Source: Takakia lepidozioides
Taxonomy: Eukaryota; Plantae; Bryophyta
Assembly: GCA_030704615.1 (NCBI GenBank)
Contig: CM060731.1
Coordinates: forward strand, 48,360,001-48,424,000
Direction: 5' to 3'
Length of the DNA stretch: 64,000 nt
Of the stretch, positions 3,377-38,100 are shown piece after piece; the stretch's first letter is position 1; each line of letters starts with the position of its first letter. The position numbers and the translations under genes are program-made. Below the pieces are notes generated by a model. It searched no databases. It was not told where the DNA came from and worked only from the letters and a program-made list of their open reading frames with translations.

Positions 3377-3384
3377 TATTTATA
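3377..3384 (-). promoter_or_regulatory. Probable TATA box of PAL copy 1
   Basis: TATAAATA on the minus strand about 250 bp upstream of the ATG, followed by a pyrimidine-rich leader. Confidence 0.6.
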
Positions 3385-8245: not shown

Positions 8246-8325
8246 CGGAGCGTGCATGTGGGCCCCAATCTTACTCTTTTCTTACTAAAAGAGTGCCATA
8301 AGTATGACCTTTCAACCCTCACATA

Positions 8326-14110: not shown

Positions 14111-14144
14111 TGACTGACTGTGGATATTTTTGGAGCCTTAGGGG

Positions 14145-14790: not shown

Positions 14791-15039
14791 GAACTTCTTG
14801 AACCTCGGTGGGTCTATGTTAGGGGCTGATTGAGGGCAGATTTCAGAAGTTCATGGCAATAATTTGTGGGCTCTTGAGAGTTATTTGAGAGGTTCTTTAA
14901 GGATAGTCTTATCTATTGCTTGAGCAAGAGTGAGTGTGAAGATAGGGGGAGTAATAGGATGAGAGCATTCTGGGCTTAGAGATTGCTTTAGCTTTATTTC
15001 TCTATAGTCTTCCATCATTCTTGTAGGCCAAAGCTTTTC

Positions 15040-16575
15040 CTGCCGCATCTCAACTCCTCATGGGCATGGCGTACCAATCGCGCTCGTTGTGTTGGATGAG
15101 GCATAATCCTCACTCGTCTATCCTCCCATACCCGGAGTAGGTGAGTCCCCTCCCACTTGAACCTCTTGGCTCGTTGTAGGACCCGATCCCTCTCCTTAGC
15201 AGTCACACTAGCTGATGTCTCTCCGGTACGAAGGTATACCAACACTGCTGCATCTTCATGCACATCTTTAGCACCACCAAACTCCTCACTAGTCTTTGGA
15301 TCGTCATGCACGCTATCTACATGACCAATCGCATAGGATGAACCAGCTTGAGTTCCCATTGCTAGAATGCACAAAAAGGCCGATGCGTGCCATCCTGGCA
15401 CCATCTCCTTAATCCGTCTCACCATGCCACCAAGCTCCAGTATCATCATGCTCGCTCGTGCATGGATTACGACTCAATCCATCTGCATCCCGATTGACAA
15501 TACCGGCTCGATGCACCACCTGGAAGTCGTACTCTTGAAGCATAAGTGCCCACCGTGCAAGCTTCCCTGTAAGCTTGTCTGACTCCATCAACCACTTCAA
15601 TGGTTGGTGATCCGTGACAAGGGTGAAGATATTGTCATAGAGGTAGCATCTAAAATGTGTCACTGTCCATACCGCAGCTAGACACTCCCCTTCATAAGAA
15701 CTATACTTTGCCTCGGCATCATTGTTCGAACGGCTAGCATATGCCAGTACGAACTCTCTTCCCTCATCATCCACCTGTGTGAGCACTGCTCCAATCCCCA
15801 GCATACTCTAATACGTATATAGCCGGAAACGCCGCTCCCAAATAGGCCGCCTCAAAATAGGTGCAGAAGTCAATTGAGCCTTGAGTTTCTCAAAGGCTTC
15901 ATCTTGCTCCTCCTCCCACTGCCACTCCTGACCCACCTTGGTCTACTTGGTAAGAGCCTTTGCAATGCTGCTAAATCCCTTGACAAACTGTCGATAGTAG
16001 TTTGCCAATCCCATGAAAGCACGAACTCTGCTCACATCCATGGCGCGTGGAATGCATGCAATGGCCTCCACCTTTGTCTGTTGAACACCTAATCCTCCAG
16101 GGTATATCATGTGGCCCAGATATTCAATCTGATTGTGGAAGAACTTGCACTTTCCGGGGTGCAGTTTCAACCCGTGCGCTCTCAAGCGCTCAAACACCAC
16201 CTGAAGGTGTCTCTCATGCTCCTCAACCGTAGCACTAAAGACGTGATGTTATCAATGTAGCACCGGGCAAAGTCTAGCCCGTGAGAATCCTATCCATGAC
16301 CCTCTGAAACTCTGCATGAGCATTTTTCAACCCAAACGGTAAGAACCGCCATTAGTACAAACAATCCTTCCCATGTTGGTCAATCCCCCATAATGTCGTC
16401 TTTTGCTTGTCAACCTCATTGATTGGCAACTGGTGGTAACCGGATCGCAAGTCCAATGTGCTAAACACCTTTGTATGCCCAATGACATCAAAGATCTCAT
16501 CTGGAGTTGGCATGGCATATCTATCGGACTTAGTCTGACGGTTCACAGGACGGTAGTCCCCACACATCCTTCTTT
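15040..16575 (-). mobile_element. Ty3/Gypsy pol fragment (RT, RNase H, start of integrase), degenerate, non-chromovirus-like
   Basis: RMCGDYRPVN..TKSDRYAMP...FSTLDLRSGYHQ, GLKLHPGKC, GIGAVLTQ...AYASRS...YSSYEGECLA and TDHQPLKWL; several frameshifts. Confidence 0.92.
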
Positions 16576-16579
16576 TGTC

Positions 16580-19240
16580 CAACGTCAGGAGAAGCGATCT
16601 GGATGGTCGACGACGCACCATGTTGCTGCTACTACAACACCAAATACAACGATCCATCAGACATCCGGTAATGATCATATGCAGATTGATGCTGTCCGAT
16701 TCAAACCATTGACGCCACAAGAAAAACAAAGACGGTGCTCGAATGGATTATGCCTTTATAGCGGAGAAGATGATTACATGGCATTAAACTGCCCCAACAA
16801 GAGAAGATTCAAAGCTCAGGACAGCACTCAAGTGTTCGATACGAGGAGGTCGGAAAACGAAGATGTCCAGTCACAGTAAGGACCATGCGGCTGAACACCC
16901 CAAATTCCTCACCAAAAAAAGATCTATTTCTACCTCCAGATCCTGTACCTTGTTTCACAGTTCCAGTAAAGATCAGGATGCAACATCGAGATATCTCCGT
17001 AGAAGCACTTTTGGACTCGGGCGCTTCAGCGTGTTTTATTGACAAAGACTTTGCGAAACAACACAATTTAACGCTCGTAAGAAAGAAATTTTCGGCCCAT
17101 GTTGAAGTCATCGATGGACGACCGTTAGCATCAGGAAATATTGACCATGAAACTCGACCCCTTGAAGTGAAGCTTAAAAATCAAGCATCACAGATTGTTT
17201 TCAATGTTATGCAGTCTCCAACGAATCCTGTGATCCTTGGACTTCCCTGGTTTGTACTTCATAATCTTGACATCGACTGGCGATCACGAAATATTTCGGC
17301 AAGACAAAAATGCAAAAGTACCAAAGGTATTCAACCCATGTTTCTTGGAGCTAGAGCCTTTATGAGAGCTACGAAGAAAGACGCGACATTTGCACTTTAT
17401 GCGACTTCAATCAAAACCACAACAGACCAAGGTACTTCGACATTACCCACTCAATATCAAGATTTCAAGGATGTCTTCGAGAAGAAAAACGCAAACATGT
17501 TGCCAGAACATTGACCTTATGATTGTGCAATTGAGTTGCAAAAAGGAGCTCAACCACCATTCGGCCCAATCTACAATTTATCTCAGACAGAGCTGGATGC
17601 TTTGCGCGAATACATTGATGAAAATTTGTCAAAGAATTTCATTCAACATTCGAAATCACCCACGGAAGCACCTATCTTATTTGTGAAGAAGAAGGACGGA
17701 TCGTTACGTATGTGTGTGGACTATCGTGGGCTCAACAAAGTCACTATAAAAAATCGTTACCCACTACCGTTGATTTCCGGACTCCTCGAACAACTTGGAC
17801 GAGCAATTTTTTTCACAAAGATCGACTTGAGATGAGCTTACAACCTTGTACGAATAAAAGAAGGAGACAAATAGAAAATTGTTTTTTGCACAAGGTATGG
17901 ACATTTCGAATACAGTATTATGCTTTTCAGTCTTACAAATGCTCCAGCAATTTTTCAACACATGATGAATGATATCTTTCGAGAATTTTTAAATGACTTT
18001 GTAGTCATCTATTTGGACGACATTTTGATATTTTCACATAATGAAGAAGAACATGGTCGCCAGGTACGCCTTCTCCTTGATAAATTGAGGGAAAAAACAC
18101 TATATGCCAAGTTGAAAAAATGTCTTTTCCACCAATCTGAAGTCGAATTTTTGGGCTACATTATTTCCGACAAATGAGTCTTTATGGATCAGAAGAAAAT
18201 ACAAACCATCATCGAGTGGATTAAACCAACTTCGGTCTGAGATGTACAATGTTTTCTAGGATTTGCAAATTTCTATAGACTCTTCATCTAGGACTACTCC
18301 AAAATTGCTGCACCAATGACACGACTCACAAGGAATGACAAATTTGTATGGGACGAGAAGGCTGACCAAACATTTGAGAGGTTGAAGCAGACATTTACAA
18401 CGGCTCCAATACTGGTACATGCAGACCCATCTAAACCATTCTTTTTTGAAGCAAATGTATCGGACTTTGTACTTGGCGCGATACTATCTTAATACGGTAC
18501 AGATGGTCGACTTCACCCTATTGGTTTTCGTTCTCGCAAATTTTCCACTGCGGAGATCAATTATGAAATCCATGATAAAGAACTTCTAGCGATTATCGAT
18601 GCTTTTGAGGAGTGGCGTCATCTATTGGAGGAAGCTCAACATCAGGTCATTGTCTATATCGATCACAAAACCCTCGAGTATTTTATGAGTGCTCGTATTT
18701 TGAATCGACGTCAAGCAAGATGGAGTATGTCATTAACAAGGTTTGATTTTGTTATTACCTACCGTCCCGGACATCTTCAAGGAAAACCAGATGTTCTTTC
18801 TCGACAATCGTATCTTTGCGCCAAAGGAAGGGGATGCAGCTTTTGACCAACAGAAATCCATCATTTTGAAACTAGCAAATCTCCAATTGAATAAGTTATC
18901 CATGTCCACCTATGACGATGCAGAGATCATAAAAGAGATTCAGGAAGCACTGAAGAGCGACCAATTTGCTACAACACTACGAAGTCAACTAAATCGACCT
19001 CGAGACAACCCGCATGTTACAAACGACTTCAAGTTCAAAAATGACTTACTTTATTTCAAATGACTTCTCTATGTACCTCAAGGACCTACACGACTTCGAA
19101 TTCTTCAAACATGTCATGATCTTCCAGCTGGAGAACATTTCGGCTTCAACAAAACAATATAAATTTTATCCAGGGACTATTGGTGGCCGCAGATGTGGAA
19201 ACTCGTGAAAGAATTTATAAAATCTTGCGACACGTGTGCC
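16580..19240 (+). mobile_element. Ty3/Gypsy (Tcn1/chromovirus-like) gag end, protease, RT, RNase H and integrase HHCC start; degenerate, truncated at both ends
   Basis: MQIDAVR...GLCLY..NCP gag knuckle, [22 protein letters not shown]...[30 protein letters not shown] and HFGFNKT...WWPQMW...SCDTC. Confidence 0.93.
16852..16893 (+). other. Putative -1 ribosomal frameshift signal between gag and pol (G GAA AAC plus pseudoknot)
   Basis: Pol is in the -1 frame and is open from the heptamer. Downstream pairings GTCC/GGAC and CAGTC/GGCTG can form an H-type pseudoknot. Confidence 0.6.
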
Positions 19241-19453
19241 CTAATTATCATTTCTGACGTGACGTGGCGCTGACACGTCAGCCGTCACGTATGATGTGCG
19301 TCACGTCACGTCCAATCCGGACGTTTATCCATGTAATATTTTTTACATTTGACTTTTATGATTTACTTCTACCCTTTGTAATGACATGGCAGCCATGGTG
19401 TAAAACAGACGTGGCTAATTATTAATATTTATTAATTCTTTTTAAAAAATGAG

Positions 19454-19872
19454 TCCGCCTATATTGGCAGTCGCATATAATTTATTGTTTTTAATAAAAA
19501 CGACCGCCCATATTGGCGATCGCTTGTAATTTAATATTTTGTTGAATTAAGCGACCGCCAGTATTGGCGGTCGCCGGTAATTTATTTATTTTGAAATGAA
19601 GCGACCGCCCATATTGGCGGTCGCCCGTAATTTATTTATTTTTAAATGAAGCGACCGCCCATATTGGCGGTCGTCCGTAATTTGTTTATTTTTAAATGAA
19701 GCGACCGCCCATATTGGCGGTCGCTTGTATTTTATTACATTTTAAAATAAGTGACCGCCTACATTGGCCATGTGGCGGTCGCTCTTCTTGTTTTTATAAA
19801 TATAGCGGCTGCCATGCAGCGGTCGAGTGTTTTTTTTTTCCTTAGAAATCCAGGGACCCGCCGTGTGGCGTT
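19454..19872. repeat. Palindrome array 2 (about 9 units, 50-bp period)
   Basis: gcgaccgcccatattggcggtcgc-type units at about 19501, 19551, 19601, 19652, 19701 and 19751. Confidence 0.95.
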
Positions 19873-19911
19873 TTGTTTTTTATTTTTAATCATGAAGCGG
19901 CGCCTCGGCCA

Positions 19912-20129
19912 GCCACGTGGCGAGGTGCCACAGGTGAGGAAAAATTGAAACAAATGGGATGGGGGGAGGTGGTTTTGAACCCTTGACCTCTCCCATGTGG
20001 GTGCGCGCGGCGAGGTGCGACTGGCCCGTCGCGTCGCGCTGACACGTGGCGAGGTGCCACTGGCCTGTCGCGCCTTTTCAAGCATAATGCCATTTGTTTT
20101 TGGGGGGGGGCTGGTGGCGCCTATATAAA
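19912..20129 (+). promoter_or_regulatory. Kinase promoter: G-box/ABRE motifs and TATA box
   Basis: GCCACGTGGC at 19912-19921, GACACGTGGC at 20041-20050 and TATATAAA at 20122-20129, about 320 bp before the ATG. Confidence 0.55.
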
Positions 20130-20444
20130 CCATTTCCCCTCTTCTGATCATTTTTGCCCCTCTTGTGGTGCGGTTCCTTGGCATCATGTAGTCCTTTCGG
20201 ACTTCGTTGCTTGGCACAACCAACGGGAGGTGCAAAGGGGATTATTTGGGGGGGAAGGTTTTGTCGGTTTTTTATTGGTCAGTCCCACACACTTGTTCAC
20301 GGTACAATCATCGTATCACCATTTTGCCGTTTCCGGATCTCCGGCGGCCTGTTTTTTTGTAGAAAACTACGAAGACACCATCCATATTCGTTCATTGCCA
20401 TTTTTATGAGGTTTTGGACCCTGTAGTGGGCAAAGGTTTATACA

Positions 20445-21906
20445 ATGTCGGGGGTTGTGAATTCAAGTTATGGGGCGGGATCGGCTGGGGGGCGAAGGAA
20501 GAGAAAACGTGCCCACGAGCGAGATAGCCAGGTCAACAAGCTAGACTACCCGGGACCGGATGCCTTGGATAGGGAGAAAGAAGTGGTAGTGGATTATTTC
20601 AAGGGTAGGGACATGATGAGGTTGGAGAGTGCTTATGTTAGGCATGGATGTGAGGGGTTTCAGATTTTTCAGCAAAATATGGAGAAGAAAATGACAAACG
20701 CTTTGGCGGGGGCTAAGTGGACGGCGGACAGGGACAAGCTGAAGTTCAATCGGTGGATCCAAAGCAGGGCGAAAGACGCCACGTGGAATTTGAGGCAACA
20801 AATGAAGACATGGAAGGGTAGAACAAGTGAAGGTCGAGTGCCCTCCGCCGAAGCTGAGTTAATGCGGCGTGTTGAGTATTGGGCTTGCTTGACAAGTCAG
20901 AAGTCACATCGCTGGACTAGGGTTGTCCCTTGGAAGGCGGGGTCATCAGGCAGAGGAGGCACAACTGGTCTTTATTACTTGAATTCTACTGCGAAGGTGG
21001 TAGAGATTGGCCCTTACAAAGAAAGAGGGTATGCTAAGGTCCATCACTGTAGGATTGTTGGCGATTCTAGAATACCGGAGAGTTGGGAGCTCGCGGGAAA
21101 AAAACCCAAGTCCAAAAATCCAGAAAAGGCGTTGAGACAACATAACGACGAGTGTTTGGCAGTGAAGTTCCAGTATCCGGGTGTTATCTCGTATTTTGCT
21201 GTGAATGCACGTGAGGTAGAGGGTTACACTCACTGGTGGAATGGGGGGACAATACGCGACATGATGAACCTTGACAGAAAATGGGGCAACGATTCGGACA
21301 ACATGGTGATTTTGGAACAAATGGGAACGGAAGCAGAGTTCCAGGAATGCGATCGCTTGCTTCATTTCCGGAAAGTGCGTAGTAAACTTGCATGGGCATT
21401 GGTGTGCATCATGGATGTTGTCCACAATAACGGTGTCCTGCACAACGACTTGTCCTCCGACAACATCTTGTTACATTTTCCAGATGGCACCGAAGAGATC
21501 AAGATTGGGGTGTGTGATTGGGGCTTAGCCACCCCATTGGGCATACGCAAAGCCTCGCCATACCAGTTTGAAAACCAAGACAAGCTGGACCGGGAACTCG
21601 CGAAAAGATGGTGGGTGGAAAAAGATATTGCATCGGTTTTCAATGCGAATGCCACGCCCCCCCTCCCAGGACATGACGTCAGAGGCCTTTGTCGTTGGAA
21701 AGATAGTGGTACGAATAAATGGCGGCGCTCATTATGATCTAAGTATGTTCCATGACCAATTTACAGGAGGTTGTTGGCATTCAATGCTACAAAAGTTGTA
21801 CGACAACAACAAGAATGAGAGAGTCACATTAGCCCATGTAGTACTTTGGTTCATGGGCAAGCCATTCAATTGGCCTGAGCCGAAAGACGTATATAGGACG
21901 GAGTAG
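20445..21906 (+). CDS. Intronless atypical Ser/Thr protein kinase, about 486 aa if one extra C in the 21657-21663 run is removed
   Basis: Degenerate Gly loop (ERGYAKV), LAGKK, catalytic loop LHNDLSSDNILL and DWG. Subdomains IX and XI (SEAFVVG, ERVT) continue in ORF 21568-21906. N-terminal basic patch RRKRKR. Confidence 0.8.
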
Positions 21907-22579
21907 ATCATAGTCTCGTAGATATGAGATTTATGGCGGTACAATGGTTCTTTTATGAAGACATAACTCAATTTTGATCATGCATGTAATAAATAAAGTC
22001 CCATTGTAAATACTACATTGCATATACTTGACCCTGACACATGTCATCGCAACATAAATGGTTTGTGTACTGGCTCACTGTTTATATTTATAATGTTCCA
22101 AGGTTTCGGATAGGGTTATGAGAAAACGATGTATTAATTCCGTAGGAGTTAGACAACAAACCTCTCATCTCATTCAACTGTGCGACACTACCATGAGAGG
22201 CATGGATCGGAAAATAATAGGTGCACATGCGACCTCCGTACGTTTGATACTAGGTCTCTACTTAAACGTGCGGAGGTCGCATGTACACCTATTATTTTTT
22301 TATCCATGTCACTCATGGTAGTATCGCACAGTTGAATGAGATATTGAACGTTTGTTGTCTAACTTATATGGATCCAATATATCATTTTCTCATTACCCTG
22401 TCAGAAACATTGAAACATTCGCAGTTACAAACAGTGCCACAATACACGGCCGGTTTTGTTGAAATGATATTTGTGAGGTTCGAGCGCATGCAATTTATTA
22501 TTTACAACGGAATTTTATTTACTTGGGGGACCGGTACTGATGTTGGAGCGCAACTGATGGTACGAGTTCTCTATTGATT

Positions 22580-22975
22580 AGAGCTGTCACAACCAATGTC
22601 AACAATCATATTTACGGTAAGGTGTTTAATGTTATTGTTGTTCTTCTAGCTGAATTCTGTAGTACTATTTTTGCTATTCCCATGCCAACGTCCTCTGAGA
22701 CTGTCATGTTCAAACAGACGTATCAGCCACCCCGGCCAGCTTGCAGGCTACAGCCATGGCCCACCATAAATTGAATGAATTGGAGATTTTGTGCGAAGTT
22801 CCTGGTTTCATGTCCGTGATGGCTGATACAGAATTCGGAATATGGCAGTCGCAGTGGACCTGATGTTGTTGGCATGGGAGTAGCAAAACGATTCATAAAT
22901 AATTCTGCTACATGAACATTGGCAGTATGAAATACCTTGCAGTACATATGATTCTTGAGATTGTTTGTACGGATT
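22580..22975. repeat. Old imperfect inverted repeat (arms about 22580-22695 and 22865-22975)
   Basis: The plus-strand NNHIYGKVF...AEF...FAIPMPTSS mirrors the minus-strand KNHMYCKVF...AEL...FATPMPTTS. Confidence 0.7.
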
Positions 22976-23261
22976 AGTTGTGTTTGTGCTTTCAAGTGGC
23001 GAACATTTCTGCCATGGTGCGGAAGACGTGCATTAAACGGTTGATGTGATACCACAAATGTATCACATCGCATTTGTGAAAATGTATCACATGAACCGTT
23101 CCATGTGACATACGGGAGTTTTCGATAGGTACGAGATCAATGTGGCCTACGAGATCTGCTTCCACCAACAAACATGTGATCATTTCAGAAGCGCTAGAAC
23201 TTTGAAGCGACGATGGGCAAGGTTCTTCATCCAGATGTTCAACATGCTGAGGTTTTCTATA

Positions 23262-23535
23262 ATGTCTCTTGCTTCGTAATGAGGTGCTTCTCCAACTCTT
23301 ATTTTTTCAATGCTAATATCTTTCATCTGGAACATATCCACACATGCGTATATAACTTAAAAAAACAAATGACCATCAAAACTGGAAGCTGGGAATGAGG
23401 CTTATAAAAGTTGAGATGGTCATTTGTTATTTTAATGATTTCTGCACACATATGTGGATATGTTCAAGGTGGAGAATATTAACATATTGGATAAAGTGGA
23501 CATGGAGAAGCACTGCATTACGAGGCCGGAGACAC
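23262..23535. repeat. Imperfect inverted repeat with about 115-bp arms and a TATA-containing loop
   Basis: cgtaatgaggtgcttctcca pairs with tggagaagcactgcattacg, gaacatatccaca with tgtggatatgttc, and acaaatgaccatc with gatggtcatttgt. Confidence 0.85.
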
Positions 23536-24396
23536 TACAAAAAGAGCTTCAAATGGCATACCATGTAACAGGAGGATCGGATGCCCATAGGTTTTTAATA
23601 CAATCGACACCACCTCCCATTGGATAGGCTACCATACACATTTCTGAATTGTGTGCATTGGGGCAAGAACTTGGTATGAAATGCAGACAAAGAGATGCAT
23701 GGCATACATGCCGGAAACCTGGCATACATAAAAGATCCCCAGTATTTATGGGTCACATCTGATTGGGAGATAACCATACGTGCGGGAGATATTCGAGATT
23801 GGTGGGAGAGAGAGCAGTTTTGCCACAATCTGGGAGGGCATTGGAGTCAAAGAAGGTCCAGGTTTATCCGGCTCCCACAGGTTCAATGGGTGCCGGAGGA
23901 GAAAGAATTGTATGACCGACAACCGATTGGGAGATATTTGTTGTTGTCCGAACTGGAAGATGCTATAATATGTCAACGCCGAATGAATGATGCGTACGAG
24001 GTGGCTTATCGTCGAAACGACACAATGGTTATGGACAGGGCCCGCGAGAGGCAGTTGGAAAGTATCAAAAGTACCATCAAGGCAGTTGTAGAGAAATGGA
24101 GGCGATTATGGACATACCGTTATCATCGTGTTTCGGGGGCTGAATTGCCGGATGTGGACGGTCTCGTTGCCGATTTGCATGCAGCTCGAGCACTTATTCT
24201 CGATCCACCTCCGCCACGTCGTGAGAGTGAAGAAGAAAGTCAACTTTCACCGCGAAGTAGGCGGATGCAGGCCAGAATTAATCACATGTCATTGGGCCCC
24301 TCATTGACCACGAGATCACGGTCGCAAGCTCTGGCAATTGGCAGTGCAAATCAGGCCACAACATCAAATTCCACATCCTCGGACAGTGACGACTAG
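23416..24396 (+). pseudogene. Unknown cargo ORF B (intact part 23695-24396, 233 aa; possibly starts at ATG 23416 with three internal stops)
   Basis: Long intronless ORF with a Trp-rich N-terminal half and an acidic/Ser-rich tail; no family recognised. Confidence 0.45.
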
Positions 24397-24844
24397 GCTT
24401 TTAATGACTGGCAGCGTAAAACATATACAATATGCATTTTTGTTGTACCTTGAATATTGTTGGAAAACACAGTGATGGCATTCCGCCAAGTTTGTACATC
24501 ACCAATTTTGTTAATACACAATGCACATGTGCAGCACCTGCCAATTTCAATTGCATGAGCAGCATTTTTTTCACATTTACACTTGTGTGATGGGGAAGAA
24601 GTAGTTCACCCTGTAAACAAATTTACAATGATGTCATATTTGATCATGACGTGTATATGGGTATTTGCAATGAACTCCGAAAGCTGGAGAACAATGAACA
24701 TTGATGTTAACAAATAAGTTATAACGAGTTACGAACGGTCATCTTCCAAACAAATTTCGCCTGGTCCCTGCGTATTTTATAATCATTTCGCAAAATCTAT
24801 GATCTTTTTATGAACATACCCACAAAGTTCTCAAAGCACAAAAT

Positions 24845-25203
24845 AATTTCGATTGATCTCATATTACACTGGGACGTATCAGATGGTACATTGAACACAC
24901 TGGCCAAGTTTCAAAGCGAACGAAAATCATTTGGATGGGCAACCATCCGTTGGGCCATTGAACGAATTTCTATTGAACTCATATTACTGTGGGGCCTCTT
25001 ACATGGCACATTGAATATAGTGGCTAAGTCTCAAAGCGCACCAAAATCATTTCGATGGGCAACCATCCGTTGAGCCATCGAATGAATTTCGATTGATCTG
25101 ATATTAGTCCGGGACCTGATACATGGTATGTTGAACATAGTGGCAAAGATTGAAAGCAAACGAAAATCATTTGGATGGGCAACCATTCAATCGCCCATTG
25201 AAT
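24845..25203. repeat. 120-bp tandem repeat, 3 copies
   Basis: aatttc.attga.ct.atatta...aaaatcattt.gatgggcaaccat units start at about 24845, 24965 and 25085. Confidence 0.9.
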
Positions 25204-25220
25204 GAGGGTTTCGTCTTCGA

Positions 25221-26363
25221 TTACACGCTTGATGCGATGCGGAGATTGTTATACCTTTGCATGTTCGTATAAATGCTATCCACGCTACGGTTTGACATGC
25301 GTGCGACACGTTGCAAGCCTGACAGTGCCCGCTTTACCCGTGCTTCTCTGGAGGCCAAATGGGTCGTTCATTGTACCCAATTCTCCCAATCGCCATTCAA
25401 TGGGACCCATGCCTGAATCTCCAGCGTTTTGGACAAGCGCCATACAGTTGCCATGACAATGTCCTGCTCCTTTGTAACGCGGTCGACATCTAATATCGGG
25501 TTCATCTCCGATTGAATGGCGACCCTCGATTATTCCCCGGTTTCCAGTACTGGTTCTTTTCTTTTTCTCCTTCTCTCATCCGCAATTCGCTGTTCCTCAA
25601 CCATGGTTTCATCGGCCATAGGGTCAAGGACGTCCGTAACTTCCTGAATGATGAGGTCAATACTGCGATCGAGCATCGCAAACTCCGCGTCCATGTCCAC
25701 GACGTTTGTTCGATCCTCATTGTGGACAACAGTGCCTTCATTGTTTGGAGGTATGTCTTGCAATCTAGCTTCCAACTCGGCTATGCGCAGTGTTTGTCAG
25801 TCTAGTCGGTCCTGCAGGGTCCTGATTCGCTGGTCTCTTTCTGCCAGTTGTTCCTCTAACGTTGCAGCCGGTTGTATTTCGAACGTGTCCAGGATGTACT
25901 CCAAATCGTATAGCAACCTTGCATTCCTCCTACTAGCAGTTTGCCAATTCACTGGACGCAAGAGTATGACCTCCAAGTACAACATGGTTGCCAAGGTATA
26001 CGGGATTTGACCCTTTAAGAGAGGTTGACCCCACAATGTGCAATGCACCTCATTCGCCCTATGCTGGAAATGCAAGTTCGTGCAAGACCTGGACTCTACG
26101 TAATTGTTTCGGGTTTGCACGTCATGCCTATCCAAAGGCCACAATCGATTGATGTGATACCATTTTAGGATTTTTTTGCATCTCGCCATCCGCCATCAGA
26201 ATTCTTCTGGAACGTCCTCCCAGCCCTCTTCTGCTAGTATGCTAGGGTCACCAAATACTTCCCAATTCAAGTCTTGTCTTTACCCTTTGATTTTCTTAGG
26301 GGGCGGTCCATGTTCATTGGGGTCATCTTTTCCATAACGGTCATCGTCCTGGCCCTCTGCCAT
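25221..26363 (-). pseudogene. Unknown cargo ORF A, about 380 codons in one frame with five internal stops
   Basis: ORFs 25797-26189 and 25530-25775 are in frame with ATG 26363. It contains an NLS-like PPPKKIK, a coiled-coil (LEEQLAERDQRIRTLQDRL...IAELEARL) and RRRKRK. The stops are TAA/TGA, consistent with C-to-T decay. Confidence 0.6.
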
Positions 26364-26729
26364 TCTACAACAATCGGAGCAACACTAAACGAGGTTTTCT
26401 AAAAAGACGTAACTCTAAACCCTTCCCTCGTTAAGTAGGTTTGAGTAGGTGTCAAAATAGTTCTTAAAAGCTAATTTTGTAGAATAAAATGATCCTGGAA
26501 GCCAGATGAGGGCCTATGGGAGCATTCTGCAACGACCTCACAGAAATCGTGGCAAAAAATACCCCCCATCCAACCAATGGCCTCCTTCTCCACGTGACTA
26601 CGTGTCGGGGATAATTAAATGTCACGCATACAGAAGTTGTGTGGAGAAGTGAGGGGAGAATAAGCCTCTCTTGGCGTATATCCCCCCCCCCCTCATTTCT
26701 CGGGCCACGTACGGGGCGAATATTCTAGA

Positions 26730-26962
26730 AGCGACCGCCAACTTGGCGGTCGCTCGATTTTTCGGAAAATAAAAAAATAAACGACCGCCAGAACTGGCGG
26801 TCGCTCCATTTTCTGGAAAGAAAAAAAATAAGCGACCGCCAACATAGGCGGTCGCTTCATCTAAAAAAAATTTAAAAAAATAAGCGACCGCCAACATAGA
26901 CGGTCGCTTCATTTTCAAAAACTTAAAAAAAAATAAGCGACTGCCAACATAGGCGGTCGCTT
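26730..26962. repeat. Palindrome array 3 (5 units, about 52-bp period)
   Basis: gcgaccgccaacataggcggtcgc-type units at about 26731, 26781, 26832, 26885 and 26937. Confidence 0.95.
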
Positions 26963-27429
26963 CATTTTCATTTTCATCCAGTCTCGTCGACTGTACAATG
27001 GGTTCGACACAATCGTTTGTATAAACATGGTTGCGTATGTCAATCGGTCCTGGCAGTACATCACCCCTAAGCTCCATTGGGGCACTACCGGTGGCTTCAG
27101 CGTGTAGTGGGAGGTGAGGGTCGACCCCAACTTCATTTTGAGGACCATGTTCTAGGGATAACACAATTGCAGCTTCACCTTCATCTGCGATACGTCTTCA
27201 AGAAGGTCATTAAAGGTCGGCTGGATATAAGCATCTTCCTCTGTGAATGTAAACGGGTCATACGCATTTTCGAGAGCATCATCGGATCCATCTTCACTAT
27301 CGGAGGCAGATGATTCCCTCTCAGATGATTATCTCTGAGGCTCAGTATCATCACTCATCGAATCAGCCTCAGAAGCAGATTCTTCGGAATGCAAATTCCT
27401 CTCATACCATGCTGCAGCATCATCCGCTG

Positions 27430-28975
27430 TCCTCTCACGTAGCAGTCGGCAATTGGTATACACATACACCAATTTGTCAGCCCTCGCGGGATTCAACCTG
27501 TTGCAAATCTTATTGTGAACAAATGAGTAACTACTTCAATTGCGTTCGCAAGATGAGGCAGAGCACACTTGAGCAATAATGCGCTTCGCAATGGGAGCCA
27601 ATGTTATTGTTTCAGCTCTAATCAGATCCCACCATTCATGTGGCAGCATATTGAGCTCTTTTGGATCCGACATGTCCTCAAAATGGTCGCGGCGATCTGA
27701 GAAGCATTGGTACTCGGATATAGCTCTCTCTGCATGGTTCGGCGGAGCTAGTCGCATGAACACTCGCACGAGGCCGGCCTTGGCATCAGCGTCGTCTCGG
27801 AGCATGGTATTATCGAACAAGAATGGATTGAGCAAAGTCCCCGCATAATGCAAGTCCGTTTGAACCATCAAACGACAATCGTAAAATGCATCCTCAGCAC
27901 TGTTCGCAAGTTCAGGTTCCAAGGAGAAGGGATGATGCATCAAGGATTGGACGTGCTTCTCAAGATTTTGCATTAGTAACCATGTCTTGCCCATTACTGG
28001 TTGCTTTCCATCAAACTCCCGCAAGACGATTAACACCGGCTCTACCATATAAACAAAGTTTTCACATTTCTTCCAGAAATCATCGCTGCGAATGCTATTT
28101 CGAACTTTTCAACTTTTGCCCAATGGCTTGCTTTTCTGGAGTCCCGCAATGTCCGTGTGTACGCAACCCATTGATGATCGATGATGGTGTGCCCCAGACT
28201 GCTCTTCACCGTCACCAACCGATCCACCATCAAGAAGTTAGTGACAAAACGAGTTTCGCTTGGATTGCGGAGGCTGTATTTGGTTTCGTGCCTCCTATAT
28301 ATTGCCAAAAGGATGTGGTATATGCGGATGAACGACACAACAGTCTTCACTCGCTTGACAAGTTGTTTCACCCACTGTTCTTTTCCCCAATCTTCCAAAA
28401 AGAGGTCAATGATATGAGTAGCACAACCTTGAAAGTACATATTAGGATAACGTGCCAACAACATGTCTGCAATGTTTCTCATGTTAGCGGCATTGTCTGT
28501 GCATATTTGCACAATTCTATCACTTCCGACCTGTTCGATGAAGTCCGTCAATAGTTCTCATTGATAAATGTTCATCTTTCTTCTCGCCGCTAGAGTCGAC
28601 TGATCCCAAGAATTGTTCCCCAGCTGGACATACGAGCATGACATTGAACAACAGTCTATTTGTGACAGAACTCCAACCCTCGGCACATATAGTGCTTCCA
28701 TATTTTCTGATGCACTCGCCCGTCCTATCGTTGACCTTTTGGATAAGCTCCGTCATGGCGTCTTCTAGCAATCATGTGCGGAGATTGTGATGAGTCGGAG
28801 ACACGTACGTGGATCTGGACTCCGAGGTTGCTCTAACGGCAGAAACAAATGTCGGAAGCCTTGCCACATTAAATGGTATGTTGGCCTCGAAGAAAAACTG
28901 TGCCCATTTTTTATCCACCTGTCTTTTCGCAGACAACTTAAGACCTTATTGCATGGATTGCTGCCGTAATCTTCT
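27430..28975 (-). mobile_element. hAT-superfamily transposase core (DUF659 plus C-terminal dimerisation domain), pseudogenised, N-terminus missing
   Basis: WAQFFFEANIPFNVA, GSTICAEGWSS, IVQICTDNAANM, CATHIIDLFLED, ETRF, LHYAGTLLNP and EWW...SASSCERN*; contains frameshifts and stops. Confidence 0.9.
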
Positions 28976-28987
28976 ACTCCGTTAAAG

Positions 28988-29665
28988 TGTAGGGGTACAA
29001 ACCCTACAACACTTGCAGAACAAGAGCTTCTTCACAAGCTCTCAAACTTTTCAATGGGGCTCTCCTTGAAGACCTCCTCTTGTATATAAACACCACAAGA
29101 CTTTCCTCTTGCAAACCCTGCAACACCTTGTAACTTAAGAGCTATCTATCAAGCCCTCTTCCACACACAAGTGCTAACTATGCTAACACCTTGCACTCAT
29201 AGATGTAAGCAGGTCTTCTTCTAGTGATACGAAAATGGTGAAAATAGGAGAAACCACTCTATCACGTTATATAAGTCAAGCCAATGGCACCTTTGCTAAA
29301 GAACTCCACCATATAAACCTCACCCACTCTCCATCTCAAATACTAGAGCTGTGGCGGCGAGAGAGGCCTCGGGAGGCTCGACTAGAAGAAGACGAGCCTG
29401 CCTATGTCTCACGTGGAGATAACCTCTCCACGTCCCAAGTGAGGTTCGCCACCTCACTTGGCACATGGAACCAAATGAAGTCCCAATGCCAACAAAATAC
29501 AAATATAAATGTATAATATCTTAATTAGCTAGAAATAACTATTTCTAACTAATCACAAACAAAACCATGACACCTCTTTGCAACCCCCTTGTATTCTCTT
29601 TGATCATAGCTACCATCTTAACTTGGAGTTAATCAACTCTCTATGAAATCAATGTGCCCCAATCA
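28988..29665. mobile_element. Probable LTR (TG...CA, about 680 bp) truncating the hAT transposase
   Basis: Termini TGTAGGGG...CCCCAATCA form an imperfect inverted repeat and there are internal TATA-like motifs. No TSD was found. Confidence 0.4.
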
Positions 29666-32439
29666 ACTGCCGCCGTCGAAATCTAATGAATCAAGACATT
29701 ATCGATGAAATTTAATGAAAAAGGGTGCCGAATTTTAGAAAAATCGGATGAAGCTTGGATGAAAAAGTTAAAATTGCCATTAAGCCTGCCGAACCTAGCA
29801 TAATTCCGGGGGGGTTTAATGATTCCGGCAGGGGTCTGACGAAATAGAGCGACCTCTACGGTATACATAATGACGTGGCACATCAGACGTCATGTTCAGA
29901 CACTCCATTTGGTTTAAGTCATGTCTTAACTAGGCTTGATTGAATTTGGGCCGCATCTGTGGCTTCCACTAGCTAAGGGTTTGTAAAATGCAGAAATATC
30001 CATCGTTGTTCTTAAAAACAAGTCTGATCAGCTATTATATTGTTCCAATCTCATTGTCCATTTGTTGTATTGTTACTAGATCAGCAAGAATTCCATACGT
30101 TCTTAGGCAGTTTTAAAATTTGGGCCCTGTCTTGTCTTCATTGAGTTTTTTCTTCATCCAGCTTTAAGGTCTAATTCAGAGCGGGCGCTTCAGCTCTGAA
30201 TAGAAAGGTGATTATTGTATTGTGACCCTACATCCAATGAAGCAAAAAAATGACAATTTAAGTACAATGACAAAAACATAGTCACTAGGGAGTGTTTATT
30301 TTTTTGTTTACTTTAGACATATCAAAGATTGGACAGAGATTGCCCCATACTCAAAATCAGTGAATCCATTTGGTTGAGTCCATTCATGTGAAGACAATAA
30401 ATTGGTCATAGAGAGCAATGTACAAATAAAAGAGCAATGAATCAAATATCAGAAGAATAAAAGTCAAATAGAATTAGGATCCAAATTAACCACCAAGTAT
30501 GAAAAAATTAAAGAGTAAAAAAGGACATCGATCAATGATAGCCGAGTACAAAGTTTTGTTCTGCATATTATCAACACAACAAAGCGAAATTAACTATTGA
30601 AGATAATCAGAAAATGATCATTTGAACTACCGGAGTCTGAACAAATTCAATGAATGAATTCATTGAAACGAGGGAGATGAAGCGTGTATGTACATGTACG
30701 TGTCTGTGGATGTGAAAAATTTAGACATTTTGGAGATTTGATTTTTTTTTATAAGAGAACCCACTGGTAGCTGAGCCTCTGCTCATCTCTTCTCATAAAA
30801 TATTAGATGGACCAATGCACTGCCATCAACCTCTCATTGAAGAAGCATACAGACCTCGTTGTAGCGCAAGGTTGGTTGATGTATGCAGTAGTCTCTCTTG
30901 AAGTCACACAACATCCTTCTCAATGTGACACATCCCACTTTTGAACCAAGTGGTCGCTCAAATTTCAATATATGCCAAATACCATATCTGTAATCAATTT
31001 CATGTATGTTCATGCAAGATTGGGTGTTGGGAAGAACATATGTGTGTCCCATCTTTGGAGATAGAGTCGGAGATGAGGACGATCCAGCGACAGTCATGTG
31101 AGTTGAGACACCTATATTGCATGTTGAGCTCGATCCATCCTTAGAACAACCTGTGGGCACTGATGGATCAAAGGCAAATGCAAAAGGACTAGCAGTTCCA
31201 CCTCGTGGACGGCCTCCAATGTCACGCTATACGAGCACATCGTCTGCTCCATTTCCTAACTCAATAGGCAAGAAAAAAAAAATAGCAGCCAGGGTGTAGC
31301 ATTGAAGAGCACAGATCCTTGCCACGACCTCCTACATTGGAGTCCGAGTGACGGGCCTTGATGTCCTCCACGGACGGAGGAGGCCAGGGGGGAGGCGCTC
31401 CTACAATATTGGTGGGAGGAGGCCAGTAGGAGACAATCATCCCAAAATAATCCTATCAAAAGTTTTTGCATTAAAATGACTGACAATAGTGTTTGTCATC
31501 GTGGATAATGTCCACTTGCAAAATTTTCAAAGAGTAAAACAAAAAAAATTCAAGAATGTCAGCTTGAAAAAAGATATAATAACGGTGTGTGACTCGTAGA
31601 AGTTGCAAATGATCGCATGTCATTTTTATAGCAAGAAACTTGAGTCTTCGAATTGTTGTTAAATAGAGCATAATTCAAATCCCATGAGTTAAGATGCAGA
31701 TGACAAAATCCAAAACGTTAAGACCTCTCACTTCGAAGAACAACACTTCGAACAGACTAGTAGATATGACTGTGAAGAACACTGCTCTAACAACAACTTT
31801 TGTGGGAACATCGACCTCAATTGGCTGTCGATTTGCGTCTCTTAGGAGCAGTTGTGATGAGATATTGGGACTCTTAACGCTTGACCTGCCCACTGGGTTT
31901 TTAATGTTTGTATTTCTATGCCTGAGCTGCGAGGTTACCGACCGACTCCATCGGAGAAGTGACAAGTCCCCAACAAACAACACAAAAGGCTCACAAGCAG
32001 GTAAAACTTTATTCTTATATTTATAATCAGTATTCCTTGCTTTGTTTTGAGTTTTCTAATCAGTTGCACTCTATAGTTTTTTTTACAACTTAACCCATTG
32101 AATTCTAGGATTCATTGAAAGGGTGCGTGTGCACAATTGGAACGACAAGACTTTATTTGAAACACTGACAAATGCTTTATATTATGGCAAATGTTATGTT
32201 ATGTTAAGGCAAATGTTATGGAATATGTGGTTAACATGGTAAGTATGCCCATGTAGCCACATGGAGTAAGTGTTAGGATTGCGAGCAAAGAGTCCCATTT
32301 GCAACAGAAAGACGTTGTAGATAGCCCCTAATGGTTCTCTGCCAACTTTATGCTGTGGGGACGTCGGATGTCACAAACCCCCTTTAGCCGTTGAAGTGCG
32401 ATGAATTCAACATCAAACCAAAAAGAGATCTAATTGCTC

Positions 32440-33015
32440 TATTTACTTACACAAAGAAATCCAGGACAAAGCTTAATTTACTAATTCACAGTCTATCCGA
32501 CAATCAACTCATGAGTATGATGAATGAGACTACAACAAAGAGGATTGAGATATTGCTCTCACTAAACAACACGTTGACAAAAGGCTTGCTAGCAAGATTT
32601 TTTTTGATGAGGAAGTTCTTAATGATCCGAATAAACCCTGTGGACACAAAGGAGCGTCACCTCAACTTGCTCTTGAGTCTCTCTCCAAGGGGAAAACTCC
32701 AAGATGGTTTTCCTACCAAAGTTTTTCTTGACTTATGGAATAGTGTTGGCTCAAGTTTGCTAGCTCTTTTTACTAGACTTTGGGGTATTGTATATATGCC
32801 TCAGTACAATAATATCTTTTTTAGTTCCAAAAAGAGGAGATTAAAGCTCGTCTCAAGAATTGGAGGCCGATTACATTACTAAGCACAATGGACACAAGAA
32901 TCTTGCAAAAACTCTTGTCATTCGACTATAGTCTGTACTCCTCTATTTGGTTAGACCTAATCAAACGAGCTTTGTGAAAGATCGAGGTCTACTCGACAAT
33001 GTTATTGTATGGGCA
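32440..33015 (+). mobile_element. Fused Copia gag fragment (about 32440-32670) and LINE RT fragment (about 32680-33015)
   Basis: LIHSLSDNQL...FLMRKFLMIRI...ERHLN is gag-like, followed by DGFP..F...W and NWRPITLL from LINE RT. Confidence 0.6.
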
Positions 33016-33684
33016 TTATAGGACATCTCAACGAATCCCGAGCCATTCCAATGAGGAGACTCCGTCAATTTAATCTGGCTTTGGTGATGAGAGGATACAA
33101 AATACCTTGGCTTCACTATAGGAGAACGTGGTTTTTATGACTACAAATATGACTGCCCCACAGTCATGAAAAAGTATATATGATTGTAGGGCCCATATAT
33201 ACTCATGCAGAGAGACCCTGTAACTTTTTTTGCTATAGATGGTCATAGTCATAAGCGCCATACAATCACATGTATCAAATCATATCCTTAACTGTTATTG
33301 ATCATCAGATTGAATTTGTTACAAAATTGTGATGTGGGTTGAACAGAACTTATAACATTCAATGATGCGGAGGATGATTTTGTGGACGTCATGAGTTCTG
33401 GTGAAAGTAAAACAGGGTCATTTAAAGAGCCCTTTTGTGTATCAAGAATTATGGACACATGGCTGCTCCAAAGCTTCTGAAGCTTTTTGTGAGGAGAGTG
33501 TGAATGACTAGTTTAGTGAATTGTTGCTACCTACAGCTCAAATGAAGAGCCTCTCTATGCATGTACATCTGGCCTTATGTTCTACTTTAGCGGTTGATCA
33601 ATGAATGCATCATATGATGCAAGTTGGAAGGGAAGTTAAAAATTCCGAATCCCTGTGACGATCTACTATCGAAGGTAATCCGCC

Positions 33685-35865
33685 TTAGCAGCGCTGGGCA
33701 AAAGGGCCGGGTGTCCCAGTCCAACCGTCCACGCATTTGAGAAGAGGACCCACAAGCTTGCCTTGGGAGATGGCATTGTACACCTTCTCAATCTCTTGAC
33801 CAGGAGACACAGTCCTCAAGCCTGATAGCAACTGGGTCCCTAATTCTGACCTCACAAATCTGTAGAGAGGGTATGTCCTGCAGTCTTCAATCCGGTTTGG
33901 CACTGCCGAATACCCCTTGTTATCGTACGACTCCCGGACCAAAGGTACAGCAATGTTCAGGCGCGTCTTCAACTCCTCTTCAAAGATTGCAATCCTGTGG
34001 AACACTGATGTAGTCTCCGATTTTTCATTCTTGGGGTTTTGGAGCGCATGACTCACCAAGACTTCCCTTAGTTTCTGCATCAGGGGGTAAGTTTCACTGC
34101 TGGCATCATCGATGTAGCTGAATACAGGCTGGCGATCCACCAGGCTGAGAAGGTCCTTCTCGCAGAACCGTGATGGCAAAAGTGCGCCGTTACTGCCTGT
34201 GAAGAGCGTCTTCTTGGCGACGTGGGAAACAATTTGCCTCACTGTCGTCTGCATCGTCTCCTCGATGTGGCGAAGGTCCACGGCCTGGCAGAGGCCCACC
34301 AAGAAAGTGGAGCTCATAAGCTTCAGAATCTCAATAGATTCCTCGGTCTTTCTTGCAGACACTAAACCCAGCGAGTTGACATCCTGGTTGTGCTGCTCAG
34401 CACTTTGCACGTGGGTGGTCACTGGGTTGGCTAAGTAGTTCAACTCCGAGAGGTATGAAGCCATGGCGATCTCCCCGCCCTTCATTCCGTAGTCCAGACT
34501 TGGGTTAGGTCCTCCACTGAGGTTTGAAGGAAGCCCATTGTTGTAGTAGTCGTTTACCAGCTCAGAGAACTGTGCAAACATGAGCTTCCCAATCGCAGCA
34601 ACGGCCAACCGCATGTTGTCCATGGAGACTCCAATGGGGGTTCCTTGGAAATTCCCGCCATGCAGGGCCCTGTCCCCGGCAGCATCAATGATTGGGTTGT
34701 CGTTGACAGAGTTGATTTCTCTTTGAATGGCATGTGTGGCATTGCGAATCACCTCCACCTGTGGGCCGAGCCATTGTGGGGAAGTCCGTAGCGCATATCG
34801 ATCCTGCTTGGGTTTCTTCAAAGGGTCGGTCTCATGGAGTTTTGCTGCTGCCTTCATGTATGAGCTTCCATCGAGCACCCACTCCATAATGGCAGCCGCC
34901 TCCATCTGGCCTGGGTGGTGCTTCAGCTTGTGCGTCAGGGGATCAGCAAACTCGGGCTTTCCTTGCATCACCTCACAGAACAGGGCCGAAAGAACCTCAG
35001 CCAGTAGGACCATCACATTCGCGTCAAAGCAGACAGTGGATGCCAAGGCTGACCCCACCGCTGTTCCATTGACAATGGCCAGGCCTTCCTTGGGCTGCAA
35101 TTCAAAAGGTTTCTCGACCCCGGCCAGTCTCAGAGCTTCCAAGGCTGACACTTCCTGTCCGTCCTCGGTGACAGCTCTGGAGTTGGGCCTGGCAGTAAGT
35201 AGTCCCGCGATGTAAGATAAAGGAACAAGGTCTCCAGAAGCGGTGACGGTCCCTCGGAGTGGCAACTTGGGTGTGACATTTGCATTCAAAAGCTTTTCCA
35301 TGGCTTCCAGGATCTCCCAACGAATGCCAGAGAATCCCTGCATTAACGTGTTGGTGCGCACAAGCATGGCTGCCCGCGTGGTGCACGCAGGGAGGGTGTT
35401 GCCCTTGCCCAAAACTCCCGCATTCAGAAACCTAATGAGCTCTCTCTGGAGCTCCACCCCTTGCTGTGTACGCCGGTGGGAGGTGGCTCCGAAACCAGTT
35501 GTGACGCCATAGATATCCCCACCGTTCATGATCTTCTGGAGAACCCAGTTGGAGCTTTCGTCCACTCGATTCTTGGCATTGGCCGCATCCAGCACCACTC
35601 TCACCTCTGGTCGGCGGGCCACGGCTGCCACTTGAGCAACCGTTAAGGTCACCCCTTCAATGGCTACTTCGGTTGCGTCATAGAATGTTTTCACCATATC
35701 TTTAACCTCGTCCAGGTGATTGCCTTGCAGGGCTGAGGCTGCTCGCCCCCAGTTGAGAGGGTCAGCAGGCTGTACCTTTGTGCAAAAAGATTCCAAACTA
35801 GCCTCGTGCTCAGCTTTGATGCCACTGCCATTGACGCTCACCCGAGCTCCGTTGGCCGTCACCAT
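33685..35865 (-). CDS. PAL: Phenylalanine ammonia-lyase, intronless, 726 aa (copy 2, identical protein)
   Basis: Translation identical to copy 1, as are all overlapping alternative-frame ORFs. Confidence 0.99.
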
Positions 35866-36111
35866 CCTCGCAGAACTTTAATGGAGACCGTGGAAAGAAA
35901 ACTAAATAAGAATTATATACCGTCCCCGCGAGTGTTGAGAAAGGAACAGAGAGAAGAGAGGCCTGTTGCGAGCTACACGGATCACAGAGAAGGGAACCTC
36001 TTCAATGGATGGAATTCCAGGTGATCTTAGTGCTGTTGAATTCAATATCTCTGAGACACCCAATCCGGAGTTTGATCGGAGAGTGATGAGAATGAGAGTC
36101 CTGAGGAGCTG

Positions 36112-36119
36112 TATTTATA
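36112..36119 (-). promoter_or_regulatory. Probable TATA box of PAL copy 2
   Basis: Same motif and context as 3377-3384. Confidence 0.6.
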
Positions 36120-38100
36120 AGCAGTGGACATAAGAGCTAGTCATGTGGGACCCAGGGGCTGATACGAAGCTGGCTGGCAGGCTCCAATACATAGGCAGTC
36201 CACGGCTGCGTCGCGACTCGCCACACCTCAAATCTGCACGCGGCCTTACTTGACTAGGTCACGCAAAGTTGAAAAACAGACCAGTATGTGATAGAATACA
36301 TATATATACACAATGCACCATCTCACAGGTGAAGTGTTGATCGGCTGAGCAGCAGCAGCCTCTCGAGAATGTGAGCAGACCATGTTGACCAGCTTCTCTC
36401 CACAACACACGTTGCTAGTGAGGCGAACTGGGAAACGCGCTGCCAAATGTGAGCACCACCTCTTTGACTATTTGAAAACCGTCCAAAGCCAACTACATAC
36501 ACTTCTTTGACTGAAGCATGGAAGATGAGGAGCACGTTGACAATTGAGTCAAATTGGGAGTATGTTTAAATATCTTATTTATTTATGGAAGTGGAAAACT
36601 CCAATTTGAAAACAGAACTTGGGTTCTGTGTTCCAGTACCTGGCTGTTGTTTTTGAGCACTCAAGAAATTTGAAAATGTGAAGACGAGTCATCTCACATG
36701 TAATACGTGACACTCATGCGATGGATTGAGGCGGAACGAAGACTGAAAGGAGAGAGGAGAGAGCACAGAATAGATGTGGGCTACATATGTCGGAAAGACG
36801 AAGAGAAGAGGAGTCCTCAAGAGACCCTAAACCGAGTGTTCAAAGTTGTTGTTGTGAGTGAAATTGTGTGCATGTGCAAAGTAAAATTCACAAAACCGAG
36901 GTGTAAGATAATTTTGAATGCTCACAAGAGGGCATTTGCAGTTATTTCAGGTAGACCTACATATAGTGGCCCTAATGTGTCAGTGCAATTGGCATCATGT
37001 GCCATTCGCTGGCTGTACAAACAAATTGGGATTACCTGTGAGTATGTGTTCGTGGTAGGCACAGAGATGGTTTGTTTCCTGGTCTTCATGCTAGGCTTTG
37101 GTTTCTGTTTTGAGTTTGTTTAGAATGGACACCCTACATCTCGCGGGTATGTTGGTGAGAGGGCAAGACGGCACGGCCTGGTTGCTCGAAATTCCCCTAT
37201 GCTTTGAACTTTGAAGAAAGAGCCTTTCCAGGCCGTCGCTAACCAGGCTAGCCTGTCCTTAAGAGCCCTGCCAAATGGCATGCGGTTGGTTTGGCACATA
37301 ATAGTTGGAGAATTCTGCCACTGACCAAGTTTGAAAAATGTTTTATCACGAGGGCTGTCTCTTGGACAGTGCCAAATAGTAGGAGAATTCTGCCACCAGT
37401 TGACCAAGTTTGAAAAATGTTTTATCACAAGGGCTGTCACTTGGACAGGGAGTGAATAAAAGAAACGAGGTGTCAGCACAGTAAGAGAAGCCTAGGCTGC
37501 ATGTATACAGTCCGTATGCAGTTCTGTCATTGATGATTGAAATGTACTGCAATGTGCGCATGGTCTGCATCCAACTGTCGTAGTGATCCCCTGGTTTCGA
37601 TTCAGCAGTCGCGGGAACCCTGAACCCCACGTACGAACTGTGTTAGTTCTAGACTAAACGAGTTCTAGACTCGATATTTGATCAGTATGAATTATCAAGC
37701 TCTAGATACGTTTACAAATCGTAGAGCTAGATTGAATGTTTAGGACTTCAAATTAATCCAGCTTCAAAATGTCACTCTGGATGATTTAAGGTACATATAT
37801 ATCTCAACTTCGGGAGATATATTTATGACGATGCCAACCGAAGTTCCAGAATTGTAACAGCTGTGTAACTAGTGTATGATCTATAGACCGCATACCTAGA
37901 TTCTAGCTGTGGTTTCCAAAAAATGTAGCATTCATGAAATAGATACGTCGGATAAGTTTGAATTTACAAACCTGTCCATGGTGTGTGTAATTACAACTCG
38001 TCGAAGAAAATGCACATGGCACCGCTCTAGCCCTCGAATCCACATCCTGATCGTCATTATATGCTGTATTACAGAGAAGCAGCAGCAAGATACATGCAGG

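Follow-up and report, generated by a model that had tools for sequence, protein, structure and literature searches.

A probable dead copy of a large multi-gene hAT-superfamily transposon beside a broken Gypsy element in the moss Takakia lepidozioides

What is the block of DNA that begins where a Gypsy integrase reading frame breaks off in the genome of the moss Takakia lepidozioides? The block lies in a stretch of 64,000 nucleotides of contig CM060731.1 (assembly GCA_030704615.1, positions 48,360,001 to 48,424,000, forward strand), hereafter the window; coordinates are those of the 64-kb window, and the block under study runs from 19239/19245 to 29972. An initial annotation had read it as a Helitron- or Helentron-like rolling-circle element carrying captured genes. 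Our analysis suggests a different origin: the block is likely to be the greater part of one dead copy of a large multi-gene moss transposon of the hAT superfamily. Such an element would encode a DUF659-type transposase of about 1000 amino acids (aa); its apparent cargo is a Ser/Thr kinase gene specific to the lineage, together with clustered long fold-backs and other small open reading frames (ORFs). Each gene start lies behind an array of one 24-bp palindrome and a TATA-like box. The features central to this reading are the following.

11435 to about 12322-12393: array 3, outside the block; 13 units of the same palindrome, upstream of the transposase N-terminal finger.
12796-13200, plus strand, outside the block: transposase N-terminal BED-like finger and linker; residues 5-72 secure, the match weak to about residue 130.
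19239-19330, plus strand: candidate hAT terminus, starting CCCTAATTATC; a 57-nt imperfect palindrome with many ACGT cores comes next (19256-19312).
19451-19826: array 1; seven units of GCGACCGCC-N6-GGCGGTCGC, mostly 50 bp apart, upstream of the kinase.
20445-21906, plus strand: divergent Ser/Thr kinase gene of about 486 codons; an N-terminal helical domain, then the kinase fold.
26731-26960: array 2; five units at a spacing of 50-53 bp, in the opposite orientation to array 1 and upstream of ORF B.
27332-29005, minus strand: hAT transposase body (DUF659, dimerisation region and acidic tail), about residues 131-676 of the relative P0176.

The superfamily assignment comes from the transposase, which combines a DUF659 core with a dimerisation region. 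A Pfam scan of the block covered 77 stop-to-stop segments of at least 60 aa on both strands of 19200-32760, and it matched only DUF659, Pkinase and, marginally, DUF5535. The DUF659 matches fall at 28045-28771 (minus strand; E = 7e-19 and 4e-9). Another piece of the same gene, 190 aa with no Pfam match of its own (27539-28108, minus strand), was searched against 1.84 billion representatives and returned 394 relatives. The best of these are 838-1043 aa long and carry DUF659 (PF04937), the hAT dimerisation domain (Dimer_Tnp_hAT, PF05699) and an acidic tail of about 300 aa. In a tblastn comparison, P0176 residues 131-676 align with 28993-27350 (minus strand) at 47-54% identity, and comparison with the 980-1043-aa relatives bearing both PF04937 and PF05699 gives 40-54%, the dimerisation region included. 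The body is disrupted by two frameshifts (near 28560 and 28120) and three in-frame stops (28946-8, 28772-4 and 27536-8). Broken genes were searched piece by piece.

On its right side the transposase homology ends at about 28993-29005, and residues 1-130 were not found to the right of 28993. A match to the N-terminal finger lies about 16 kb from the body, on the opposite strand, at 12799-13017 (plus strand; P0176, P0027 and P0028 by tblastn/blastx, E 2e-7 to 1e-4). It has an ATG at 12796, a TATA box TATATAAG at 12470 and array 3 directly upstream, so that the palindrome array is linked to the transposase at a second site in the window. This separation of N-terminus and body on opposite strands, with each part adjoining palindrome arrays, adds to what the initial annotation had described. 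The two parts are complementary and have no overlap at the DNA level. They could represent one gene cut by an inversion of about 15.8 kb (about 13200-29005) or two truncated copies, and we consider these possibilities evenly balanced. A single inversion of that interval would rejoin the parts into an element of about 11.6 kb with arrays at either end. For two separate truncations to have fallen no more than about 30 codons apart by chance, the likelihood would be a few per cent. The inversion is rated no higher because the transposase linker is poorly conserved and no breakpoint signature of the inversion was found.

The palindrome arrays tie these parts together. Each unit is a 24-bp palindrome of the form GCGACCGCC-N5/6-GGCGGTCGC, with a usual spacing of 50 bp; near-exact matches number 11 where 0.01 would be expected, and beyond the three arrays the palindrome is absent from the 64 kb. 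One and the same array, accompanied by a TATA-like box, precedes three gene starts, those of the kinase, ORF B and the transposase, and this common arrangement is the strongest evidence here for one element family. Arrays 1 and 2 stand in inverted orientation to each other, and the start of array 3 coincides exactly with the point (11434) at which a Copia gag-pre-integrase reading frame breaks off. We propose that the arrays may be dimer-binding sites, acting as promoters or enhancers, as transposase-binding sites, or as both. A metagenome scan was made with GGCGGTCGC-N20-34-GCGACCGCC, a pattern that forms an inverted repeat in its own right; the 119 contigs it matched were unrelated, almost all of them G+C-rich and of bacterial appearance, and none contained an array.

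The kinase noted in the initial annotation was recovered as a Pkinase match in an ORF at 20445-21737. A single frameshift near 21650 shifts the C-terminal part into another frame, which continues to about 21903-21906. A word search gave 25 relatives at 26-52% identity, including M758_3G001500 (KAG0621197.1) of the moss Ceratodon purpureus, and several of them represent clusters of 15-30 sequences; none was found in viral and genome contig collections. The catalytic residues K219, E236, D335, N340 and D358 (Lys, Glu, HxD Asp, Asn and DxG Asp) are conserved in the family, as are the motifs LHNDLSPDNILLHFP and CDWG. An AlphaFold model has an N-terminal helical domain and a generic kinase fold (Foldseek probability 1.00 to ULK1 and JAK2), and the protein is only distantly related to any solved kinase structure. 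Judged from its sequence, the gene belongs to a real, divergent and conserved kinase family that looks catalytically competent.

The remaining features of the block and its two edges are as follows.

16394-19240, plus strand: truncated Gypsy retrotransposon (gag, protease, reverse transcriptase, RNase H and integrase H2C2 finger), the left flank, broken at 19238-19242.
19860-20140, plus strand: G+C-rich region resembling a promoter, in which CACGTGGCGAGGTGCCAC is repeated and a TATATAAA box lies at 20122-20129.
21990-23543: three tandem fold-back hairpins, at 21990-22521 (532 nt), 22589-22968 (380 nt) and 23254-23543 (290 nt).
23695-24396, plus strand: ORF A, 233 codons, an orphan.
24845-25204: tandem repeat, a 120-bp satellite in about 3 copies, counted as 2.8 over 24845-25186.
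25533-26195, minus strand: ORF B, about 221 codons, an orphan with a coiled-coil-like tail, interrupted by one in-frame stop (25797-25799).
29006-29972, no strand: right-hand stretch with a 22-nt motif TGACGTGGCACATCAGACGTCA at 29871-29892, a weak candidate terminus ending TCTTAACTAGG at 29934, and CTAG at 29969-29972.

From left to right the block thus comprises the ACGT palindrome, array 1, the G+C-rich region, the kinase, the three fold-backs and ORF A, and then the 120-bp satellite, ORF B on the minus strand, the inverted array 2 and the minus-strand pieces of the DUF659 transposase. The palindrome arrays, satellite and long hairpins described in the initial annotation are all present, as are its two ORFs of no known family. 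ORF B occupies the place behind array 2. The TATA box TATATAAA at 20122 stands 323 bp before the kinase ATG at 20445. This distance nearly equals the 326 bp between TATA box and ATG at the transposase start (12470/12796), and the two leaders have no detectable sequence similarity. The first fold-back is exceptionally stable (z = -23.7); the fold-backs fold equally well on both strands, with no strand bias, and have no Rfam match. The idea that they are inverted copies of the kinase or the transposase was rejected, as they resemble neither.

Every gene in the block is decayed. The stops in the transposase and its missing 130 codons, the frameshift in the kinase and the stop in ORF B leave the present copy unable to move. 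Its anatomy is consistent with a live copy that would move by cut-and-paste: the transposase would bind subterminal sequences, cut the element out and insert it again, duplicating 8 bp of the target. A more specific version of the hAT reading holds that this is an autonomous multi-gene hAT lineage in which the catalytically intact, lineage-specific kinase is kept as a conserved transposon gene and is no captured piece of a host gene, the genes are driven from phased palindrome arrays that may also bind transposase, and the transposase has been split by the inversion of about 15.8 kb. We offer this version tentatively, as a possibility of somewhat less than even standing.

Several results weigh against assigning the block to a hAT element. 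A search across the window for a terminal inverted repeat (TIR) pair with an exact 8-bp target-site duplication (TSD), under any choice of boundaries, returned only array-internal or unrelated pairs, so the short TIRs and the 8-bp TSD of hAT elements were not found. The left start CCCTAATTATC has no inverted partner in the window, and no 8-mer at the left junction has a partner in the 8-bp TSD test. The lack of an 8-bp TSD is expected of a truncated or rearranged copy. ORF A and ORF B have no Pfam family, no relatives by word search and no usable Atlas match. A RING-H2 pattern was not found in the six frames of the window, nor was there any zf-RING Pfam match. Finally, kinase and transposase were compared in this one window, and their co-mobility is a conjecture.

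These gaps lend some weight to an alternative in which the neighbourhood arose by chance: a hAT fragment would happen to lie beside junk ORFs and a pseudogene of a host kinase, and the arrays would be an independent dispersed repeat such as a satellite or MITE-like element. No TIR or TSD encloses the gene set, ORF A and ORF B are orphans, the kinase relatives carry no transposase domain, and the region is crowded with broken remains of Gypsy and Copia elements nested in one another, all of which such an account would accommodate. It does not readily explain why one kind of array, confined within the 64 kb to these places, should precede the kinase and ORF B and also, at a distance of 7 kb, the start of the transposase, with a TATA-like box in every case. 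The clusters of 15-30 sequences behind several kinase relatives also argue against a stray host pseudogene. We therefore regard a chance neighbourhood as unlikely.

The left edge bears on both the hAT reading and a second alternative. The initial annotation had a Gypsy integrase interrupted at 19240, and this is confirmed: the Gypsy domains matched in Pfam are gag-asp_proteas, RVT_1, RT_RNaseH and Integrase_H2C2, and the last match stops at that position. The edge itself (19239-19242) falls within an integrase codon. It is followed by 13 ACGT-core hexamers in one 200-bp bin, a density unique in the window, and the palindrome there is self-complementary, with a DNA fold of -20.1 kcal/mol (z = -3.4). 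Because an integrase codon is interrupted and a unique subterminal palindrome follows, the boundary at 19239-19242 is probably a true element end. By eye, TAATTATC followed by an ACGT-rich stretch ending CACGTGG occurs at 19242-19270 (plus strand) and again at 26590-26620 (minus strand); the second patch lies between array 2 and ORF B, and its order relative to the array differs from that at the left terminus. Two proposed partners of this edge were rejected: an inverted partner of the left terminus at 14323, which sits within an unrelated tandem repeat, and a 10-mer common to the Gypsy junction, 25302 and 63358, which is a chance match.

The earlier picture of a Gypsy element cut by a 10.7-kb block with both flanks kept fares less well, as the right flank was not found. 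Past 29972, up to 32760, the Gypsy sequence does not resume and no reading frame is integrase-like; the rve domain is absent from all 77 segments, and no long terminal repeat (LTR) partner of the Gypsy element was found within the window. An insertion with two retained flanks is therefore unsupported. The left flank belongs to one of two distinct Gypsy fragments lying back to back, at 15018-16248 (minus strand) and 16394-19240 (plus strand). The minus-strand fragment has reverse transcriptase and RNase H matches and, by eye only, ends near the integrase N-terminus.

The second alternative takes the left edge at 19239 as a breakpoint of a local segmental duplication or rearrangement, with the block inside a duplicated segment of at least 25 kb that includes a phenylalanine ammonia-lyase (PAL) gene. 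The window does contain a large direct duplication: 1-11317 and 32736-44106 are 98% identical over 11.4 kb at a spacing of about 32.7 kb, and each copy holds an intact, intronless PAL gene of 726 codons (Lyase_aromatic) together with the 5′ portion of a Copia element. The block sits between these PAL-bearing duplicates, amid broken retrotransposons. The duplicates diverge at 11317/44106, where copy 1 stays Copia to 11434 and copy 2 enters a pentatricopeptide repeat (PPR) gene fragment (44328-44855, minus strand), and the junctions at 11434/11435 and 44106/44107 are abrupt. Against this alternative, the left edge carries the unique 57-nt ACGT-rich palindrome, as a subterminal region should, and such a rearrangement is compatible with the hAT reading rather than exclusive of it. 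As a competing explanation we judge it improbable. A macrotransposon spanning 19239-44106 and moved whole into Gypsy was also considered and rejected, the flank from 44107 being the PPR gene fragment and not integrase. The same PAL genes qualify an earlier argument that intronless genes set the block apart from its host: the genes are as described, but the contrast is weak, since the adjoining host PAL is also a single ORF of 726 codons.

The right edge is less well defined than the left. No protein homology was found in 29006-29972, and the boundary at 29972 has no independent support; it is arbitrary and not established. The candidate terminus ending TCTTAACTAGG at 29934 matches the left end at 8 of 11 positions by eye, lies about 50 nt outside the shared motif and has no TSD, and the match could be due to chance. 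The motif TGACGTGGC..ACGTCA reported at both ends is present, at 19259-19279 and 29871-29892. The imperfect subterminal inverted repeat also described for the two ends was not recovered: no alignment reaches beyond about 20-22 nt, and MAFFT gave no wider inverted repeat. The best end-to-end relation pairs 19287-19308 with the reverse complement of 29871-29890 (19/22 nt, E = 0.7). Nine of the 11 copies of ACGTGGC in the window lie in the block, between 19262 and 29873; the motif is general there, and its presence near both ends is therefore weak evidence of termini. Each of the two candidate termini occurs once in the window.

These results also bear on the original rolling-circle reading, in which a Helitron- or Helentron-like element would end at 19245 and 29972 and its genes would be captured cargo. 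A CTAG does stand at 29969-29972, both ends do share TGACGTGGC..ACGTCA, and internal satellites and hairpins exist. The shared motif is general to the block, however, and the CTAG is followed by C rather than T, as the initial annotation had itself cautioned. The GC hairpin placed before the CTAG is at chance level (best -3.4 kcal/mol, z = +0.27, with 121 of 200 shuffles folding as well). The block begins CCCTAATTATC after the integrase match ends at 19240, with no 5′ TC or A/T context, and the Gypsy target does not resume beyond the proposed end. The absence of a Rep/Hel ORF, already listed as a caveat, holds for all 77 segments: they contain no Helitron_like_N, PIF1, other helicase or endonuclease, nor the Rep/Hel with an AP-endonuclease domain of a Helentron, and the only transposase present is hAT. 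Helentrons are not known from land plants. With no RepHel, no significant 3′ hairpin, no A/T context and no resumed target, a Helitron or Helentron is highly improbable. The fallback of the initial annotation, a large mobile family equipped with accessory genes and promoters of its own and perhaps mobilised by hAT, survives in all but its rolling-circle part.

The block does resemble Helitrons and Helentrons/HINEs in being large, in carrying genes, in having satellites and stem-loops inside it, and in the CTAG near its proposed 3′ end. It differs from them in lacking RepHel, in its chance-level 3′ hairpin and wrong flanking base, and in having a hAT as its resident transposase.

Compared with known transposons, the element family is an unusual variant of hAT. 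Like the plant hATs Ac/Ds, Tag1 and Tip100, it combines DUF659, a dimerisation region and an N-terminal BED-like finger, and its repeated short motifs in inverted orientation may be counterparts of the subterminal motifs of those elements. In contrast to them, the present element exceeds 10 kb, includes several genes (the kinase and the hairpin cluster among its contents) and has long phased arrays of 24-bp palindromes before its genes. Its transposase, at about 1000 aa with an acidic tail of about 300 aa, is also distinctive, and this copy has neither TIRs nor an 8-bp TSD. Elements of the hAT superfamily are abundant in the genome of the moss Ceratodon, and no kinase cargo has been reported there (PMC8245031). 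Our literature search found no paper on a kinase-carrying hAT element.

Multi-gene organisation is familiar from other plant transposons. PIF/Harbinger elements pair a transposase with a Myb-like ORF, CACTA/En-Spm elements encode TnpA and TnpD and have subterminal repeat arrays, and cargo is carried by KAONASHI MULEs (a ULP1 protease) and by Pack-MULEs. The present element shares with these a second conserved gene beside the transposase, and subterminal repeat arrays that are probably, by analogy, bound by an element-encoded protein. It differs in belonging to the hAT superfamily and in its accessory gene, which encodes a full-length, catalytically competent-looking protein kinase and has a promoter of its own; the accessories of those other elements are instead DNA-binding partners, proteases or captured exon fragments.

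Other features of the window lie outside the block. In the stretch 13742-14723, CAGGGTTGGG precedes a run of GGATGAA repeated 15 times about every 20 bp (13772-14100), and then come 55- and 67-bp tandem repeats (14143-14723), an arrangement that resembles the subterminal region of another DNA transposon. The motif at 13742 recalls the Ac terminal repeat; no inverted partner of CAGGGTTGGGAGCAC at 13742 was found. Farther right, 45430-45732 and 60127-60429 form a 303-bp inverted repeat of 94.7% identity whose arms are about 14.4 kb apart; the pair may mark the ends of a further large DNA element with long terminal inverted repeats, and it encloses a 460-codon ORF with no Pfam family, at 55229-56611. 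A 270-codon ORF at 61625-62437 (minus strand) contains a partial TatC domain (E = 2.8e-11) and may be organelle-derived or a truncated gene.

The value of this analysis is mainly corrective, in that a false Helitron/Helentron lead is removed and the right boundary is shown to be arbitrary. DNA transposons with a conserved signalling enzyme of their own are rare. If the kinase is a true gene of this element, it would suggest that the transposon manipulates phosphorylation, either that of its host or its own.

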